From the sequence record NC_048037.1: a stretch of DNA of 37,311 nt; one strand, 5' to 3'. The translations under genes were made by a program, and so were the position numbers. Below the pieces are notes generated by a model. It was not told the DNA's origin and did no database searches. It worked only from the letters and a program-made list of their open reading frames with translations. Of the stretch, positions 25,898 through 33,542 are shown in pieces; position 1 is the first letter of the stretch; every line of letters begins with the position of its first letter.

Positions 25898-26777
25898 TAA
25901 AATGCCCGTTACTACCGATTTCATCAATTTAGCAGAACAACTTACACTTAACGGATATAAGAGTACATCCGCATACGTACAAGGTCTCCAAGTCCAAAGC
26001 ACGTTTTACATAGTCCTATTAAATAACGGGAACGTGGTAGCACAACTCCCCGTTTCACAATTCAAGTATAACGAAATAAGCCAAAACGAGCAAGCACTTA
26101 TCTACACTGCAATTGACAGCAGTTCAAACACGTATACGTTCAACGAGGTACAATTATGGGCTGGTAACCAATACATTATAACAGATGATATACTACAGCA
26201 GAGCGTCACGAAAAACCCGGGAATTTCCGTAACCGTAAACGTGGCAATAGAACTTTCAATAGAGACTAATACTTATCAAGGAACGATCAACATAACACGT
26301 ATAACACCCGTAGGACCTGTGAAAACACCGATCCCGGCATACTCATTCTGGTTATACGTATCGGGTAACTGTCACGCCATATCCACACCCATCTTCATAG
26401 TAAATTACATCATCCTCACGTTACTTATACCAACGTCATTCTATAATAATATACAAAACACGTTGTTCATGCAAACGTATAACCAACTAAACGTCCCCAT
26501 AAACGAGTTTAACGGAATCTCACTAATTGCCGTAGCGTTACCTTCAGCGATTATAAATATCGCAAATAGGCTAATCCCGCAAAGCGTGTCTTATCAATGT
26601 ACGACCTTACCACCTAATACACCGTTTAAACCTTCCACGACATATTCCTCAACTCTTGTAGGAGCATTCATGGACATGGGAGGAATTAAAGTACAAGTAA
26701 TAACAATACTCAATAAGCAACTACTCGCCACAACAAACTATTACATATTTCAAATAGTGGTGATACAAAATGAGTAA
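25890..26777 (+). CDS. Virion-end beta-sandwich protein, paralog family (295 aa)
   Basis: VLLNNGNVV, YTFNEVQLW, SVTKNP; clear paralog of 24908-25897. Confidence 0.8.
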   Translation: MSDKMPVTTDFINLAEQLTLNGYKSTSAYVQGLQVQSTFYIVLLNNGNVVAQLPVSQFKYNEISQNEQALIYTAIDSSSNTYTFNEVQLWAGNQYIITDDILQQSVTKNPGISVTVNVAIELSIETNTYQGTINITRITPVGPVKTPIPAYSFWLYVSGNCHAISTPIFIVNYIILTLLIPTSFYNNIQNTLFMQTYNQLNVPINEFNGISLIAVALPSAIINIANRLIPQSVSYQCTTLPPNTPFKPSTTYSSTLVGAFMDMGGIKVQVITILNKQLLATTNYYIFQIVVIQNE

Positions 26778-28521
26778 CCCACTAATAGATATCGAGAAAT
26801 TATTTACCGGCATTTTCAGACCCGTCACTAACGTACTTAGCGGAGGCATTAACACAGTAGCGTCAATTCCTCATGATATCGAAAATTTCGGGAACTCGGT
26901 TGTGAAGACATTTAACACACTAGTACGATATCTCGCACAAATACCAAGTGATATATTCAACTTTCTATCACAAATTCCCGGTGCGATCCTCACCGGGTTA
27001 CACATGTTCGGTTCATGGATACTCTCAGGGTTCCAAACTTTAGGTTCCCACATATTGGGAGCGTTAAAAATAGCGTTCTCACCACTGGTTGACGCCATAC
27101 ATTACATAGCATCCCATATACCCGACCTAATAAACTTCTTCGCTTCAATCTACACCGACCTAAGAAACATTATAAACACGATACATAACAACCTTGTAAA
27201 TATCTTCACAACAGCGTTCAGACTCGTACAAGACGCGATTGAAATCGTGTTCGGCTTCCTAAACGTGGCTCCTCAGATATTCAGAGCATTTAGTATATTT
27301 GTACAAGATGCAATAAATTTCGTAACAACACAAGCTACAACACTAGTATCATCCGCATCACAAATGTACAAACACTTTACGGACTCAGTACCCTTTGACA
27401 TCTTAAAACAAGAATCATCAAAATTCGGCAAAGCTACGGCAAGACTGATCGGGTTTAACACTGCAATGGAAATAATGAAAAGTACAATAAGAAGGAGTTG
27501 GCTATCACAAAACATATCACCCTTAACAAGGGCGTTAATGTTAGCGTTCAGCCCTGTGGTAGCGGGTATCAGCGGGATGTTTGCGGAAACAATGATACAA
27601 GCGTTCTACCCGGATATCACATCAACCACAATAAAGAGGTATACGCCACCAACCACGTCCACGACACTATTCCCGTACCATACAACTCATGTAGAACCAC
27701 CATCGTTCGCGTCAAAGAGTTACATAACAACACTGTCACAATTAACACCACCACCGGCTCCTCCATTGTTACCGCAATTCAAACCGGGTCACATAATAAG
27801 CATATACATCGAAGACGTCATAACACTAAACCAGTTCGTAGTAACCGGTGGTCTGGTATCAGCATCACAGTACGCACAAATAATATCTGACACACTGAAC
27901 TTACAGTACAATTTAGTGGTAAGACTGACACCCGTAGTTTTAATAACCGCCACAGACTTACTAAGTCCCTTACTGTCATCATCCATTACCACAGCAGTCT
28001 CACAAAACGTGAACACGATCACAGTAAACGCTTTCGCAGAAGTAGGACAACTTGCAGTACCCCTAGGCTCATCTGTGTGTACCACATTAATCGCTCCGGC
28101 TTCATACGTTTACGGTGAAAACACGGTAGATTACTTAAATGTAGCATACAACTTATGTATAAACATAAACCAGGCAATACTTGACTTCATTAACTTCTAC
28201 ATCACAACACAACCACCACCCGGTAATGTACCCACTACTACTGTAAACATCTTCATCACAACACAACCACCACCCGGTAACGTACCTACAACTGTAGTAA
28301 ACATTACGGGTACTACAATATTACCTCCTCCTAATATACCAACCACCATATTCAGTATAACAATAACACCCGGATTACCACAATTCACGGGACATACTAC
28401 TCTTGCGTTCACAACTCAAAACGTGACAACCAGAATCGGAGGGACTGCTACAACAATAGTTATAAATTACACGCCAACTATAACAATATGCCTACAAGGG
28501 GATGGATGTTATTCAGCGTGA
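26770..28521 (+). CDS. Large structural protein (583 aa): 11-residue amphipathic repeats plus Thr/Pro-rich C-terminal repeats
   Basis: Consecutive 11-mer blocks in the N-terminal part; TTQPPPGNVPTT repeats. Confidence 0.85.
   Translation: MSNPLIDIEKLFTGIFRPVTNVLSGGINTVASIPHDIENFGNSVVKTFNTLVRYLAQIPSDIFNFLSQIPGAILTGLHMFGSWILSGFQTLGSHILGALKIAFSPLVDAIHYIASHIPDLINFFASIYTDLRNIINTIHNNLVNIFTTAFRLVQDAIEIVFGFLNVAPQIFRAFSIFVQDAINFVTTQATTLVSSASQMYKHFTDSVPFDILKQESSKFGKATARLIGFNTAMEIMKSTIRRSWLSQNISPLTRALMLAFSPVVAGISGMFAETMIQAFYPDITSTTIKRYTPPTTSTTLFPYHTTHVEPPSFASKSYITTLSQLTPPPAPPLLPQFKPGHIISIYIEDVITLNQFVVTGGLVSASQYAQIISDTLNLQYNLVVRLTPVVLITATDLLSPLLSSSITTAVSQNVNTITVNAFAEVGQLAVPLGSSVCTTLIAPASYVYGENTVDYLNVAYNLCININQAILDFINFYITTQPPPGNVPTTTVNIFITTQPPPGNVPTTVVNITGTTILPPPNIPTTIFSITITPGLPQFTGHTTLAFTTQNVTTRIGGTATTIVINYTPTITICLQGDGCYSA
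28189..28350 (+). repeat. 54-bp tandem repeat (two close copies plus one degenerate) encoding 18-aa Thr/Pro units
   Basis: CATCACAACACAACCACCACCCGGTAA identical at 28200-28226 and 28254-28280. Confidence 0.9.
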
Positions 28522-28527
28522 TGTAAT

Positions 28528-29112
28528 ATGTTAGTATGCATACCTGTTGGATGGGTAACTTATACTGAACCACTTCTCAACACTGTAAAGTGGGCAAATG
28601 AGGGTAAATTCAAATTCGATTTCGCCATATCAAACCGCGTAGACTTAAATAGAAGTGTATGCATATCTAAAGCGAAACTGTTAAAGGAAGACCTAATAAT
28701 GATAGACTCAGATATAAACGTATTAAACCCACCATTACAGTTAAAAGAAATATTAAAAGAAGATGAACGGGAAGCCGATATCGTATTGGGGATAGCAGTA
28801 AGCCACCTGGGAGTTTTAATAGACCCATTACCGCCTAAGGACAAAGACCTATACGAAATAAATTGGGGATCATTATCATTCGTTTACATACCGTTCAAGA
28901 CATTAAGAAAACTGAAGCACATAGCTAAATACCCGCAAAATATAAACATGTACATGACGTACAAACCCTACACATCAGAAGACGTTGAATTCATAAGGAG
29001 ATTAAAAAAGAAAGGGTTCAAGGTTATGGCTGACAAGAGGATAGCGTTAAACCACTTTAAACTCGTACCACTGCGTTACATGTCCCTTGAGTTCGAAGTA
29101 CAAACAAAATGA
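28528..29112 (+). CDS. GT-A fold glycosyltransferase (194 aa)
   Basis: MIDSD, AISNRVDLNRS, SEDVEF; paralog of 8629-9237. Confidence 0.85.
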   Translation: MLVCIPVGWVTYTEPLLNTVKWANEGKFKFDFAISNRVDLNRSVCISKAKLLKEDLIMIDSDINVLNPPLQLKEILKEDEREADIVLGIAVSHLGVLIDPLPPKDKDLYEINWGSLSFVYIPFKTLRKLKHIAKYPQNINMYMTYKPYTSEDVEFIRRLKKKGFKVMADKRIALNHFKLVPLRYMSLEFEVQTK

Positions 29113-30590
29113 AATATTTTATCCGCGAGTTTTTCACCCAATACATCACGTATAATATCACGTTTAGAACATAAATTATACCTAGTAACACCACTCCTGA
29201 ATAGTTTGTACGCCCTCATCCTACCTATATACGGTATATCTATAAGTCTAGCTATTTCCCTAACGTTTTCTAAAGGTATGCCGTAGCGTAAAGCCAAACT
29301 TATGTCATCATACCTGTCATCCTTAAATAAAGCCATAATGTGAGCCTTATAACTAGCCTCTTGAAGTAATTTATACTCACCGTACCCTATCTTATCAAGG
29401 TTGATAGCCCTTTTGAACAACCCGTATAACTCCCTATCACTCATTACACCGAAAGCATTACACTCCTCGGCAACGTCCAAGCTTGAAGGTCTCATTAAAT
29501 AAGACAAGACACACAGTCTGTAATCATCAGAATCTATACGATAATAATCAAAGTCCATGATCCTCTTGGCGTCAACGGGGTGGACAAGGTGATAAGCAAT
29601 ACTCTTCAATAACTTGTGGTCACATATACCGTATTTCTTACATATATACTCAGTATCTCCGCCTATCATCTTCGCGAAATCAATGTCATATTCAGTAGGA
29701 GTAAACTTAGCGGGGTCACTTAAATTACGTACGTCAAATGTAACATATATAACACCTTTACCACGTCTACCGACCCTACCAGCGAACTGGATAAATGAAG
29801 TCTTATCAAGGTACCTATTTGACGTAAATATGCCGTAGTCAAAATGGTAATCAACACCGTAGTTAAGTGCTGTAGTAGTACATATAACCTTGATCTCACC
29901 TAGCTCAAGCAAACGTGACACTTTTTCTCTATCGCTAGCACTCATTTGACTGTTATAATAAGCTACACCCTTCCTAAGTAATTGACCCAAGACCGGGTCA
30001 TCGGTGTCAACGTCAACACCGTCCATGAAAAAGTCAGCAAGCTTAAGGCACATTGTCCTCGTTAATTCCGTTGAATGAACGTAAATGAAACCATACTTAC
30101 CCGGATCCACATACTTACGCCAATCATCCACCTTGATTATCTCGTATTGGCTACCGTTCTCCCCTAAATCAATTACATCATCAAACTTAACTGAAATATC
30201 AACAGGCGTAGCACTGATGAAATAACGCCTATACCCGGTCGTATTAGCAATTGAAGAGTAAATAACATGAGAAAATAACTTATTAGCTATAAGACTATAT
30301 TCATCAAAAATTATAACGTCATTGTGAGTAGCACTTGAAGGGTTATCATGAAGAGATAAAAATTGGTTAAACTGGTTATAAGTGAAAACGTATATCTTGT
30401 ACGTCTTGTCAAAATTATTACCCACAATATCTCCGTAAAGTTGACTATAACGTTGATATAATTGTATCGCTAAACTCCTTAAAGGAACAAGATGAAAAAC
30501 GCGGTGATATCTAGATACGAAATCACCGGCTTTACTTATCATCAAACGTGTTTTACCGCTTCCCGTTTTCCCCTTTACAAGTATATCCAT
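29076..30590 (-). CDS. Superfamily 2 helicase, Ski2/Hel308-like (504 aa)
   Basis: GKTGSGKT, LVPLRSLA, IFDEYS, ISAT, TTALNYGVD, QFAGRVGRRG, C-terminal HhH-like IPYIGRMRAYKL. Confidence 0.9.
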   Translation of the reverse strand: MDILVKGKTGSGKTRLMISKAGDFVSRYHRVFHLVPLRSLAIQLYQRYSQLYGDIVGNNFDKTYKIYVFTYNQFNQFLSLHDNPSSATHNDVIIFDEYSLIANKLFSHVIYSSIANTTGYRRYFISATPVDISVKFDDVIDLGENGSQYEIIKVDDWRKYVDPGKYGFIYVHSTELTRTMCLKLADFFMDGVDVDTDDPVLGQLLRKGVAYYNSQMSASDREKVSRLLELGEIKVICTTTALNYGVDYHFDYGIFTSNRYLDKTSFIQFAGRVGRRGKGVIYVTFDVRNLSDPAKFTPTEYDIDFAKMIGGDTEYICKKYGICDHKLLKSIAYHLVHPVDAKRIMDFDYYRIDSDDYRLCVLSYLMRPSSLDVAEECNAFGVMSDRELYGLFKRAINLDKIGYGEYKLLQEASYKAHIMALFKDDRYDDISLALRYGIPLENVREIARLIDIPYIGRMRAYKLFRSGVTRYNLCSKRDIIRDVLGEKLADKIFHFVCTSNSRDM

Positions 30591-30700
30591 ATAACATAAG
30601 TTTACGATAATACCCTTTTATTTTTTACGGTTAATAAGAAAATAACACGTAACAGAAAACCTTTTAAATGAAACCAACAAGTTGTTTTATAGGGGAAAAA

Positions 30701-31120
30701 ATGTCTGAAGAGGAAAACCAAGAAGAAGAGTTAACCCAAGAAGAATTAGAGGAAAAACAACAGGTAGAGGAAGACATAGTACTGGACGAATCCAAAATAA
30801 AAGAAATCAGTGAAGGCATACCGGCAAAAGTGGTAAGTATAAAAAAAGGTAGATTACTTGATTTGATAGGAGAAGTAAGGAATACTGATAGACTATCGGA
30901 AAAAGCGTTGGACTGGATAAAAGCACAAGGTGAAGAACCGTACCTATTAATAACATGCGACGTGGAAGGCTCACAAAAGAAGTTCCTAGTCCATTACACA
31001 TGGTCTAAAAACTCAACGCTCTACAAAATGGTCAAGAAGTACAAGAGAATAGCCGTAGGCACTGAAATATTAGTAAAGTTCAACCCGGAAGCAATGAGAT
31101 ACCAAATCGTAACGGATTGA
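30701..31120 (+). CDS. Acidic-tailed beta-barrel protein (139 aa), candidate OB-fold ssDNA-binding protein
   Basis: ATG at 30701 after GGGG; Glu-rich N-terminus, then AKVVSIKK..YLLITCDVEG..VGTEILVKF..YQIV. Confidence 0.6.
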   Translation: MSEEENQEEELTQEELEEKQQVEEDIVLDESKIKEISEGIPAKVVSIKKGRLLDLIGEVRNTDRLSEKALDWIKAQGEEPYLLITCDVEGSQKKFLVHYTWSKNSTLYKMVKKYKRIAVGTEILVKFNPEAMRYQIVTD

Positions 31121-31428
31121 TAGATATGGGCAGAAAAACGGAACCTGCCCGTATCGTTAACTACATCAACAAAAGCTTACCTAAACGAGTTAAGGTAATT
31201 GATTTTTTTGATAATATCCGCACACGTCTCGAGGAAATCATAACGTTCAACTTGGATCACGGAGCAAACCCAATCACTTTTTATTCAATCCAACAAATTT
31301 TCGCTTATTATAGAGAAGTAGCAATAGCGTCACTCTCAAGACAAGTACCAACACCGGAAGCCGAGAAAATCGTAGATGACATAGTACAAAGAGAACTAAA
31401 CGAACTCTTTAACAAATATTACAAGTAG
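31117..31428 (+). CDS. Hypothetical helical protein (103 aa)
   Basis: Coupled within the cluster. Confidence 0.7.
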   Translation: MIDMGRKTEPARIVNYINKSLPKRVKVIDFFDNIRTRLEEIITFNLDHGANPITFYSIQQIFAYYREVAIASLSRQVPTPEAEKIVDDIVQRELNELFNKYYK

Positions 31429-31444
31429 TAATAAGGTGAACAAA

Positions 31445-31987
31445 ATGAAAGAAGATCAACTTACGATTGAACTACCTTTCGAATTCGTACTCTATAACGG
31501 GTATTCAAAACATGCCTTAAAGAATTATAAGGGTGAAACTATGCCAAGCATAGGGATAACGAATAGGTACATGTGTAAAATACACAAACGTATCGAGTAC
31601 ATGATATTTCTTGATATAGATAAAAAAGTCAAATTAAAACAATTAATAAAATTTGTAAAAAAAAGACGGGCTATGATAACGAGAACAAAATACGGTTATC
31701 ACATAATAATAGTAACACATGAAAAATCACAATATAGAAACGAAATAGATACGACAAGACTAGCACTAAAAATGATAAATAAAAAAATACCGGTTGATGT
31801 GGGTCATATCTTAACGTGCATGAACAACAACCGATTCATATTGAGAATTTACGGAAAATACAAGGACAACCCATACGTTAAAATAGTGTATAAAAAAGAT
31901 GACCCGATCTTGAACGATATTGCGAAATTATATGAGGTGACAAAATGTCAAGAAAAATCACTATTATTATTCCAAAAAAATTTATGA
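31445..31987 (+). CDS. Compact archaeo-eukaryotic primase (AEP/PrimPol)-like catalytic domain (180 aa)
   Basis: Motif I MIFLDID, motif II RTKYGYHII, motif III VD, then FILRIYGK; AGGTGA SD before ATG 31445. Confidence 0.7.
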   Translation: MKEDQLTIELPFEFVLYNGYSKHALKNYKGETMPSIGITNRYMCKIHKRIEYMIFLDIDKKVKLKQLIKFVKKRRAMITRTKYGYHIIIVTHEKSQYRNEIDTTRLALKMINKKIPVDVGHILTCMNNNRFILRIYGKYKDNPYVKIVYKKDDPILNDIAKLYEVTKCQEKSLLLFQKNL

Positions 31988-32616
31988 AGGTGTTAGGCAT
32001 GAAGTACACAAAATCCGCATATTTACCTTTTATGATCACGTTCGGAGTAAATCTACCCGAAGATGAATTCGTGAAAACGGAAATAATAGAAAGAAGAATA
32101 GAATACATTAGCACAATTGATAGAGCAAAAAAACTAATCGAAGAGAAAACATTAGGAAAACCCATAAATACCTATCATTTAGATTTAGGTCTAAGAATAA
32201 CACAAAAAAACATAAACACAAATGAAATAAGTTTCAAAAACACAACATGCGATTACACAAAAGTAGAAAAAGAAGAATATACTAAAATATTGAGGACAGC
32301 GTACATTGAAGACGCAGTAACAAAAGCCGTACCAAAAATAAACAACAAAAAAGCCTTCGCGTACGGGTACACGTTACTCTGTTACCTCGAAAAAGACACA
32401 GAACTAAAATTCCTTAACTCATACATTGAAGCAATAGAATTTTTCAGAAAACTACATACATATTATGCGTATAAAAGAATAATGAGATACGAACCGAACG
32501 ACCAAAAACTAAAAGAAATGGTAAACGACATGAAAAAACTGTTACCGCAAAACGAACCACAAAGTAAAAAAGAAGAAATAAGAAAAGAATTAGAAGATTT
32601 GTATATAGAATTATAG
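31945..32616 (+). CDS. Hypothetical protein (223 aa), coupled to the AEP-like gene
   Basis: GAGGTGA SD; long Lys-rich ORF. Confidence 0.8.
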   Translation: MSRKITIIIPKKFMKVLGMKYTKSAYLPFMITFGVNLPEDEFVKTEIIERRIEYISTIDRAKKLIEEKTLGKPINTYHLDLGLRITQKNINTNEISFKNTTCDYTKVEKEEYTKILRTAYIEDAVTKAVPKINNKKAFAYGYTLLCYLEKDTELKFLNSYIEAIEFFRKLHTYYAYKRIMRYEPNDQKLKEMVNDMKKLLPQNEPQSKKEEIRKELEDLYIEL

Positions 32617-32625
32617 GAGATAAAA

Positions 32626-32964
32626 ATGAAATATAAAAATTGTCTCAAAAACTGTAAAACTAAAAAAATAAGGTCAAAAGAACCGTCAATACATTTATTC
32701 CTAACACTTTACTTAAAAGTCACAGGTGAAAAACTAAAGAAATGCGACAATTTTTGCAAAGTTTACATAGCGTTTCTTGACGTAGGAGAAATCATGTTCG
32801 GAGGAACATGGAAACGCATATGGAGAAAACAACTAAATATAAACAAAATAAAATTATTTAAATGCACACACTGCGGACAAGTATTTGAATTGAGAACGGG
32901 AACGGAACACATCCTCGAGTTCATGTATTCAAATAAAATAATGGAAAGGGTGTTACAAGAATGA
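32626..32964 (+). CDS. Zinc-finger-like protein (112 aa)
   Basis: FKCTHCGQVFELRTGTEH plus other Cys pairs. Confidence 0.65.
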   Translation: MKYKNCLKNCKTKKIRSKEPSIHLFLTLYLKVTGEKLKKCDNFCKVYIAFLDVGEIMFGGTWKRIWRKQLNINKIKLFKCTHCGQVFELRTGTEHILEFMYSNKIMERVLQE

Positions 32965-33542
32965 AACTAGAAGAATTAAAACAATTGGTAGAAGAAGAGA
33001 AAAAGAAACCCCATAACAAGGAAGTAAGAGTAACACGTGCAGTAACATGCCCGACGTTACAAATAAAGGAATACTACGGAATAAATATGGGAAAACTAAG
33101 ACACCAGATAATAGAAGAAAAATTAAAAAGCAAAGGGTTAGAGACGGAAGTTGAAATCGCACTAACAATTGATAACGTGCTTATAACAGGTCACGTAGAC
33201 GCCCTAGACCTAAATAACTTAACAGTATACGAAATAAAACCCTCAAGAATTTACGACAATTACATAAGACAACTGTCAATGTACGTAACAATCCTAAGAA
33301 AACTCACGGGACTAAATTTTACAGGAAAATTTATAATATATGTAGGAGAAGAAGTATACGAACTAGTACCACCATTCCTTGACACGACTATCCTCGAGAC
33401 AGTACTAGAAGTACTTCAAGAAGAAACAACAATAAAAGGAGAATATTGCACACTATGCATACACGATAAAAAATGTGATAAAAAGAGGGAATGGAAAAGG
33501 AAGATGGGATTTGAAATAGCTGAAATAACCAAATTATACTAA
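32961..33542 (+). CDS. cas4: Cas4-like PD-(D/E)xK nuclease with Fe-S cysteines (193 aa)
   Basis: N-terminal TCP, GKLRH, ITGHVD, YEIK, RQLSMY, C-terminal CTLCIHDKKC; stand-alone, no CRISPR array in the genome. Confidence 0.85.
   Translation: MKLEELKQLVEEEKKKPHNKEVRVTRAVTCPTLQIKEYYGINMGKLRHQIIEEKLKSKGLETEVEIALTIDNVLITGHVDALDLNNLTVYEIKPSRIYDNYIRQLSMYVTILRKLTGLNFTGKFIIYVGEEVYELVPPFLDTTILETVLEVLQEETTIKGEYCTLCIHDKKCDKKREWKRKMGFEIAEITKLY

Follow-up and report, generated by a model that had tools for sequence, protein, structure and literature searches.

The window analysed here, 37,311 bp in length, corresponds to the entire genome of Sulfolobus filamentous virus 1 (SFV1; MH447526.1, identity 100%), classed in Lipothrixviridae, Alphalipothrixvirus, and the region of interest corresponds to the annotated genes gp52 to gp58 (Table 1). 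At its centre lies gp55, a small protein that, on the ground of motif conservation and of a modelled fold, very probably belongs to the superfamily of archaeo-eukaryotic primases (AEPs) and is most likely a viral primase. In the SFV1 annotation gp52, on the minus strand, is a putative SF2 helicase, gp53, gp54, gp55 and gp56 are hypothetical, gp57 is a zinc-finger protein and gp58 a putative Cas4 nuclease; neither a DNA polymerase nor a primase is annotated. The published description of the virus, whose genome is linear with terminal inverted repeats, likewise gives a role to no genes but those of the helicase, of the zinc finger and of Cas4, and names no primase or polymerase (PMC6105669). An earlier reading of this DNA, made from its letters alone and hereafter called the original prediction, had described gp53–gp58 as a co-transcribed block diverging from the helicase gene. 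This layout was found as described: gp53–gp58 are all on the plus strand, with intergenic distances of 5–16 nt or with overlaps (43 nt between gp55 and gp56, 4 nt between gp57 and gp58), and they diverge from gp52 across an A/T-rich spacer. The length of one neighbour needed correction, as the supposed 103-aa protein is annotated as gp54 with its ATG at 31126 and is three residues shorter.

Table 1. Features of the gp52–gp58 region of SFV1 (positions are those of the window; functions are predicted)
Feature	Position	Strand	Remarks
gp52, Hel308-like SF2 DNA helicase	29076..30590	-	504 aa; Pfam ResIII, DEAD, Helicase_C
Divergent intergenic spacer	30591..30667	.	77 bp, A/T-rich; presumed back-to-back archaeal promoters
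gp53, conserved orphan	30668..31120	+	150 aa, isoelectric point (pI) 5.0; acidic N-terminal tail, conserved core of ~105 aa
gp54, conserved orphan	31126..31428	+	100 aa, basic; position and sequence conserved
gp55, stand-alone putative AEP-superfamily (primase-polymerase-like) protein	31445..31987	+	180 aa, pI 9.75; AlphaFold2 model, fold search, motif conservation
AEP motif I, hhhDhD = IFLDID (D57, D59)	31604..31621	+	end of strand 49-58; DID at 31613-31621
TKYGYH	31685-31702	+	contains motif II
AEP motif II, sxH = GYH (G84-Y85-H86)	31694..31702	+	start of strand 85-93
AEP motif III, hD = VD (V117-D118)	31793..31798	+	D118 just ahead of helix 119-128
LRIYGK	31841-31858	+	contains motif IV
AEP motif IV, Rh = RI (R134-I135)	31844..31849	+	strand 132-139; followed by invariant G137-K138-Y139
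gp56, mostly helical conserved protein	31945..32616	+	223 aa; gene overlaps 3' end of gp55; candidate partner subunit
gp57, metal-binding protein	32626..32964	+	112 aa; CX3C...CX3C plus CxxC...H finger
gp58, Cas4-like PD-(D/E)XK nuclease	32961..33542	+	193 aa; PHROG 1706 at 5.9e-10

AEPs carry the motifs I (hhhDhD/E), II (sxH) and III (hD/E), to which a motif IV (Rh), located in the so-called flange strand, was added later; motifs I and III provide metal ligands, motif II takes part in nucleotide binding and motif IV in the binding of nucleoside triphosphates (PMC5862659). All four were identified in gp55 in this order, and the positions that the original prediction had given for DID and TKYGYH proved to be exact; VD and LRIYGK, also named there, are located as in Table 1. 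The ordered pattern hhhDh[DE]...sxHhh...h[DE]...hRh arose once in 20,000 composition-matched shuffles of gp55, and among the window's 72 stop-to-stop open reading frames (ORFs) of 100 aa or more, gp55 itself is the only one to contain it.

The conservation of the family was then considered. GenBank phage records hold a near-identical relative in SBFV1 and a 35%-identical one in SBFV2, and no others. When 1.84 billion cluster representatives were searched exhaustively with HMMER, nine family clusters were retrieved, with proteins of 153–230 aa, and a scan of JGI metagenomes yielded 36 further hot-spring loci, while no cellular relative of gp55 was found in 185,579 species genomes. When gp55 and the 22-sequence profile were used as queries in word-index homologue searches, nothing but family members came back. 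In the family alignment (22 sequences, members 28–45% identical to gp55) 21 of the 180 positions are invariant, including D57, D59, G84, H86, D118 and R134. The five residues selected beforehand from a single sequence are all among the invariant ones (P = 1.4e-5), which is a fair test since the choice preceded the alignment. Several further invariant residues have no AEP counterpart (Y17, Y20, K26, P34, C44-x2-H47, E51, H92, K138, Y139, D153 and Y163). Two homologues (SBFV2 gp61, L004:5983-6672, and L005:691-1347, where L numbers designate the loci collected here) carry an insertion of 40–45 aa, devoid of any Cys/His pattern, between motifs I and II; the zinc-knuckle insertion of PriS is located between the same two motifs.

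A confident AlphaFold2 model was obtained for gp55 (pLDDT 88, pTM 0.83). In this model the motifs occupy the strand and helix boundaries reported in Table 1, that is the arrangement of AEP core structures, and the position of R134 in the strand following motif III fits the described flange strand (PMC5862659). When the model was compared with the PDB by Foldseek, ranks 1–19 were all taken by AEPs, which also accounted for about two thirds of the top 50, with probabilities up to 0.98. These matches included the polymerase domain (PolDom) of M. tuberculosis LigD, HP0184, the PriS of Pyrococcus, Sulfolobus and human, poxvirus D5/E5, the CRISPR-associated Prim-Pol CAPP and Prim-PolC, the best full-length match being HP0184 (2ATZ, 176 aa; TM-score, TM, of 0.46). 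In the viral library BFVD, the best non-self match was an unannotated protein of Pyrobaculum spherical virus (PSV), followed by phage DUF927/primase-helicase and AE_Prim_S-like proteins; a PFV1 protein (A0A140F3J6) matched weakly. The invariance of motifs I–IV, together with the 19 leading fold matches, supports the original prediction of a minimal AEP core.

The PSV match (Foldseek E 2.5e-3) most likely corresponds to ORF235 (L013:6815-7516) because, of the two 234-aa ORFs of PSV, it is ORF235 that carries the motifs, in the form IDWD, AWH, TD and ILRV and in the same order as in gp55. The ORF235 family comprises PSV, PSV2 gp26 (L053:1300-1902) and metagenomic relatives. By hhalign, it aligned with the gp55 family with an E-value of 8.1e-5 over 118 columns, all four motifs being in register, and in a joint alignment of 18 sequences from both families the sole invariant residues were P34, D57, D59, H86, D118, R134 and D153. 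The residues surviving across the two virus families would thus be essentially the AEP catalytic set, and their persistence between virus families infecting different archaeal orders is the signature expected of an active enzyme, as opposed to decay or coincidence. Judging from their sequences, PSV ORF235 and PSV2 gp26 are true distant homologues of gp55. Like gp55, they possess an additional ALKxY...PxIG element upstream of motif I, and the equivalent of D153 is conserved. Unlike gp55, they are longer (200–240 aa), most have an N-terminal Cys-rich insertion, and they lie beside unrelated genes in another virus family with Thermoproteales hosts. In the PSV-like members this insertion (C...C...C...C) is found between the first strand and the ALKxY element, and it may represent a built-in zinc module. 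In the preprint on PSV2 only four of the viral proteins carry an annotation, and no primase is described. About 98% of globulovirus proteins are without known relatives.

Among the neighbouring genes, gp56 is of particular interest, as the original prediction had suggested that it, or else gp54, might provide the PriL/PriX-like accessory domain lacking in gp55. For gp56 this suggestion was not sustained. The AlphaFold2 model of gp56 is confident (pLDDT 86.5, pTM 0.80) and consists of long helices and a β-hairpin, and it had no fold match in the PDB (best E 0.73, TM 0.2); profile searches retrieved nothing. The invariant residues of gp56 are P10, C102, R117, C146, Y147 and D151, only two of them being Cys, as compared with the four Cys ligands of the PriL 4Fe-4S cluster. 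Judging from the model, gp56 may have a new fold. It is nonetheless the likeliest physical partner of gp55 on genetic grounds, because the two genes overlap in every locus.

The remaining neighbours fit better with what had been foreseen. The predicted Hel308-like helicase was recognised in gp52 by its SF2 Pfam domains and by sequence matches in the PDB to S. solfataricus and A. fulgidus Hel308, which extend to the C-terminal domain (gp52 396-495 to Hel308 617-705). NCBIfam Hel308 models ranked top for gp52 with scores far below their equivalog cut-offs, hence gp52 is better described as Hel308-like than as a Hel308 equivalog on sequence criteria. Moreover, gp52 is a full-length homologue of SIFV0007, the 'Holliday junction branch migration helicase' (E 7e-14), and by this similarity it is orthologous to the lipothrixvirus helicase; SFV1 gp02, considered as the orthologue of the SIFV helicase, was ruled out in favour of gp52. 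The expected zinc-finger protein was likewise found in gp57, with invariant C6, C10, C40, C44, C80, C83 and H95 and weak matches to zf-UBP, C2H2 and MJ0042 CXXC; from its sequence it is a candidate template- or DNA-binding module acting in trans. As for gp58, the anticipated Cas4-like nuclease, the D..ExK and QxxxY motifs are present together with one N-terminal and three C-terminal Cys. Residues D80, E91, K93, Q104, Y108, C163, C166 and C172 are common to gp58, SIRV2 gp19 and SIFV0006, and C30 is also present. Besides PHROG 1706, gp58 matched NCBIfam cas4 (4.4e-7, below cut-off), its orthologues matched Pfam PDDEXK_1 at about the cut-off, and hhalign with SIRV2 gp19 gave an E-value of 3.7e-5.

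The two orphans, gp53 and gp54, had no match in Pfam, PHROG, NCBIfam or the PDB, no link between gp53 and SIRV2 gp17 was obtained by hhalign, and no relatives of either protein were detectable outside SFV1-like viruses by sequence or profile searches. The OB-like character ascribed to gp53 in the original prediction thus found no backing in sequence and profile searches. Homologues of gp53 occupy the same position in all loci; a role of gp53 in binding single-stranded DNA is only a guess. The start of gp53 is itself ambiguous (30668 or 30701). At 30660-30703 a TTTTAAA box abuts the annotated ATG (30668), and a second ATG (30701, M12) is found at typical promoter distance, for which reason the true start may be 11 codons downstream of the annotated one; the N-terminus of gp53 varies among relatives. 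As regards the spacer itself, TAAAAAATAAAA is located on the minus strand, 26–37 nt upstream of the ATG of gp52, while gp53 is preceded by the boxes TTAATAAG and TTTTAAA, so that TATA-like boxes can be read at suitable distances in both directions. We infer that the spacer would function as a pair of back-to-back promoters, because it resembles the known TATA architecture of Sulfolobales.

The operon-like character of the module, another element of the original prediction, is supported by conserved synteny. The gene order helicase (minus strand), an optional gene termed a0, then the homologues of gp53, gp54, gp55, gp56 and gp57 is kept in ~40 metagenomic SFV1-like loci, and the helicase gene adjoins the module in all of the long ones. 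The overlap of the gp55 and gp56 genes amounts to 4 or 1 nt in 32 of the 33 loci other than SFV1 and, being found everywhere, suggests translational coupling. The Cas4 gene is inside the block in every locus, at a variable position: it ends the plus-strand operon in SFV1, SBFV2 and L010, and is directly downstream of the helicase gene on the minus strand in an L007-like lineage (L019:2665-3246; L026, L028, L033, L037), an arrangement also seen in the betalipothrixvirus SIFV. The gene a0 (~131 aa; for example L007:1379-1774, L009:4201-4593 and L010:8808-9200), which had no family match, lies between the helicase gene and the gp53 homologue in most relatives and is absent from SFV1 and SBFV2. 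It was considered as a possible gp53 paralogue and discarded, hhalign giving no signal.

Other Ligamenvirales had been indicated as a place to look for the same cluster: only the helicase/Cas4 pair is shared with betalipothrixviruses and rudiviruses, whereas the gp53–gp57 block is found in SFV1-like viruses only. With the SIRV2 gp17-gp18-gp19 operon and the helicase/Cas4 pair of SIFV, the SFV1 module has in common the Cas4-like nuclease (gp58, corresponding to SIRV2 gp19 and SIFV0006) and the helicase (gp52, corresponding to SIFV0007), the two being adjacent; the gp53–gp57 block, AEP included, is absent from those viruses. No homologues of SIRV2 gp17 and gp18 were detected in the SFV1 module. 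When gp53, gp54, gp56, gp57, a0 and a further orphan, x, were compared with SIRV2 gp16–gp19, with the SIFV neighbours and with the neighbours of PSV ORF235, no link was found; the sole link that emerged was that of Cas4 with gp19.

Some additional features were observed around the module. The orphan x (247 aa) is encoded downstream of the zinc-finger gene, and in some loci it is present as a convergent pair of diverged copies (L019:7610-9047; L026:7610-9071). In a distant relative (L009:678-2314), genes for a ThyX thymidylate synthase and for a 248-aa ribbon-helix-helix protein adjoin the module helicase on the same strand. The gene following Cas4 in L010 (12257-12760) has a precomputed Pfam match to KwaA (Kiwa defence) that was not reproduced by hmmscan at E ≤0.1.

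Considering these data together, it is highly probable that gp55 belongs to the AEP superfamily, and we give about 60% to the view that it works in genome replication as an active primase or polymerase; a primase is the most likely form of such an enzyme. Its basic character (pI 9.75) is in agreement with this reading. The protein would be a two-metal nucleotidyl transferase, with D57 and D59 of motif I and D118 of motif III holding the metal ions, and H86 of motif II and R134 of motif IV the incoming nucleotide. Within a module for DNA replication or recombination encoded by the virus, gp55 would form the catalytic centre and synthesise primers, perhaps with short extensions as well, on single-stranded viral DNA exposed by unwinding by the Hel308-like helicase gp52 and by 5'-3' resection by the Cas4-like nuclease gp58. 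A host polymerase would elongate these primers and perform the bulk of the synthesis. Since the gp55 core contains neither a zinc nor a helical accessory domain, it is probably gp56 and the Cys/His metal-binding protein gp57 that would bind the template and the initiating nucleotide in trans. Priming might take place during a strand-displacement or recombination-driven replication of the kind seen in AFV1, for which strand displacement has been reported (PMC4889955). The motifs with their conservation, the resemblance in fold and the conserved synteny were observed, while catalysis itself, a primase rather than a polymerase activity, the roles of the partners and the use of a host polymerase are inferred; the explanation in its entirety, partner roles included, seems to us a little better than an even bet.

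Several observations weigh against this reading. Searches with the gp55 sequence and with three profiles gave only noise in Pfam, PHROGs, NCBIfam and the PDB (for the last by phmmer and hmmsearch), and hhalign of the gp55 family with the primase-polymerase domain of pRN1 was negative. The AlphaFold2 model was built on an alignment of 10 sequences, and its Foldseek scores are individually weak (best E 0.03, none below 1e-3, TM ≤0.46); PriS and LigD align with it over only ~100 columns at a root-mean-square deviation of 5–6 Å, so that the comparison with PriS and PrimPol folds recommended in the original prediction was favourable in its ranking and poor in its scores. Some parvovirus NS1 fragments appear lower in the BFVD list, and the RRM-like core is common to AEPs and to HUH Rep proteins. 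That the five motif residues form one pocket is a proposal, their placement being read from the model as strand and helix ranges. Finally, the proposed roles of the neighbours rest on guilt by association, and by model and profile searches gp56 bears no likeness to PriL, PriX, PriCT or the helix-bundle domain. As no significant sequence or profile match was obtained, gp55 is, by sequence, outside every described AEP family. Sequence similarity is not defining for the AEP superfamily, many families of which are joined only by structure. In our own reading, the fold evidence is consistent in its direction and individually weak, and it is the conservation that makes the AEP assignment strong. Our verdict is that the gp55 family is very probably a new, highly divergent AEP family, unrecognisable by sequence, in a new gene context and with homologues in Globuloviridae.

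Most of the alternatives leave gp55 within the AEP superfamily. It could be an AEP-fold enzyme devoted to end repair, gap filling or terminal-transferase work in place of priming, acting like LigD PolDom or Prim-PolC alongside Cas4 and the helicase, either in recombination-dependent replication or in the upkeep of the termini, at linear ends or at recombination intermediates. The best Foldseek E-values are indeed those of LigD polymerase domains, the partners that are always present (the nuclease of Cas4 type and the 'branch migration' helicase resembling Hel308) belong to recombination and repair, and the linear genome of SFV1 with its terminal inverted repeats, as well as the strand displacement of AFV1 (PMC4889955), would suit such a task. 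We consider it improbable: the LigD alignments span only ~98 columns, HP0184, CAPP and D5 agree better over the whole length, and the SFV1 annotation lists neither a ligase nor a Ku or phosphoesterase partner. Since AEP primase and polymerase activities are compatible, this is in any case a variant of the primase reading more than a true rival. A comparable, low likelihood is given to gp55 being an origin-specific initiator of the ColE2 Rep/RepB' type, laying down one unique primer at a terminal or internal viral site instead of serving as a general lagging-strand primase. The recognised AEP families include ColE2 Rep-like, RepE/RepS and RepB' (PMC5862659), HP0184, whose fold matched best over the whole length, is placed with RepB'-like enzymes (PMC8065100), and gp55 is a small stand-alone protein whose putative DNA-binding partners, gp57 for instance, are separate. 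On the other hand, no origin or repeated binding site was identified, neither gp55 nor its neighbours revealed a winged-helix or PriCT recognition domain in model and profile searches, and in silico nothing separates this initiator from general priming. Both the repair and the initiator enzymes are accordingly regarded as variants within the AEP repertoire, inseparable in silico.

More radically, gp55 might not be a nucleotidyl transferase at all and might correspond to an RRM/palm-like nickase or Rep of the HUH type, to a DNA-binding scaffold or to an inactivated AEP, the motif match being convergent or coincidental. Rudiviruses encode an HUH-related Rep, all the AEP links of gp55 are below conventional significance, with no sequence-profile match, and the extra invariant residues outside the AEP set include tyrosines that a nickase could use. 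However, gp55 has no HUH (H-hydrophobic-H) motif, the distance between H86 and H92 being six residues; all of the 19 leading PDB matches are AEPs, with no Rep among them; hhalign of the gp55 family with SIRV2 gp16 (Rep) was empty; and the residues kept across two virus families are the AEP catalytic set, as purifying selection predicts. The absence of an HUH motif, the AEP-only top fold matches and the preservation of AEP residues across families make this explanation decidedly unlikely. The rolling-circle endonuclease 'Rep-Arvir', described in 2026, was also considered as an identity for gp55 and rejected, that family being characterised by a TBP-like fold (DUF7845) and by a catalytic Tyr; the paper makes no mention of lipothrix- or globuloviruses (PMC13107129).

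Returning to gp55 as a putative primase, a stand-alone AEP of its size has a precedent in HP0184 of Helicobacter pylori (2ATZ; Campylobacterales AEP), described as a previously undescribed AEP subfamily, stand-alone, and crystallised with bound nucleotide (PMC8065100). Like gp55, HP0184 is a single domain with no fused accessory domain and of nearly equal size (176 against 180 aa), and no other structure matched so well over the whole length (TM 0.46/0.47, probability 0.97); unlike gp55, it is bacterial and chromosomal, in another gene context, and the two share ~10% identity with no detectable sequence homology. PriS, which together with PriL (and PriX) makes up the replicative heterodimeric primase of archaea and eukaryotes, shares with gp55 motifs I–III and the motif IV Arg/Lys in the flange strand; its structures (1G71, 1V33, 1ZT2, 9F28 and human Pri1) are among the top fold matches, and its catalytic subunit needs separate accessory subunits, as proposed for gp55. 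In contrast, gp55 is half the size of PriS, has no zinc-knuckle insertion and no sequence similarity to it, and gp56 displays neither a PriL or PriX fold nor a four-Cys Fe-S signature. In the plasmid and viral primase-polymerases (pRN1 ORF904, PolpTN2, RepB', NrS-1, poxvirus D5/E5 and phage DUF927) an AEP core of a mobile element starts the replication of that element, and an equivalent role is predicted for gp55. The motif IV Arg in the flange strand is conserved in the PrimPol-PV1 supergroup (PMC5862659), as is the invariant R134-I135 in gp55. SF3 or MCM helicases, along with PriCT, helix-bundle or zinc domains, are the usual fusion or pairing partners of those enzymes (PMC4889955, PMC5862659), whereas gp55 is unfused and is accompanied by an SF2 Hel308-like helicase, a Cas4 nuclease and orphans.

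The statement in the original prediction that these viruses are without a recognised polymerase agrees with the annotations, in which no AEP or polymerase is recorded for them. No earlier account of an AEP from SFV1, Lipothrixviridae, Adnaviria or Globuloviridae came up in our literature searches, although their coverage was incomplete and prior knowledge is possible. Lipothrixviruses have been noted as having no recognisable replication proteins, and a global survey, remarking that some hyperthermophilic archaeal viruses are without typical ones, suggested highly diverged proteins or new strategies (PMC4889955). A conserved candidate primase with five named predicted catalytic residues brings the question of how the genome is copied in lipothrixviruses, globuloviruses and many hyperthermophilic archaeal viruses within reach of direct experiment. 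That candidate is embedded in a fixed helicase-nuclease module of one virus family and has a homologue in another, and is thus of interest both for archaeal virology and for primase evolution. If correct, the assignment would add to the AEPs one of their smallest and most divergent branches, a thermostable form of which could perhaps be a useful enzyme. The other proteins of the module, above all the confidently modelled and unmatched gp56, are worth structural study.

A bolder proposal, which we put forward tentatively and consider rather unlikely, is that gp55, gp56 and gp57, possibly with gp53 and gp54, constitute a new kind of split primase holoenzyme. It would combine an AEP core of ~150–180 aa with accessory subunits unrelated to PriL/PriX/PriCT and would employ a Hel308-type SF2 helicase instead of SF3 or MCM, the same lineage being the replication enzyme of Globuloviridae. 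Were this true, a virus-specific primase family would unite several crenarchaeal virus families thought to have no replication proteins.

Outside the module, gp50 (26770-28521, 583 aa) was seen to contain, in its C-terminal part, near-identical Thr/Pro-rich repeats, with ITTQPPPGNVPTT present twice and followed by a degenerate third copy; from its sequence this part looks like a glycosylation-prone or fibre-like segment.

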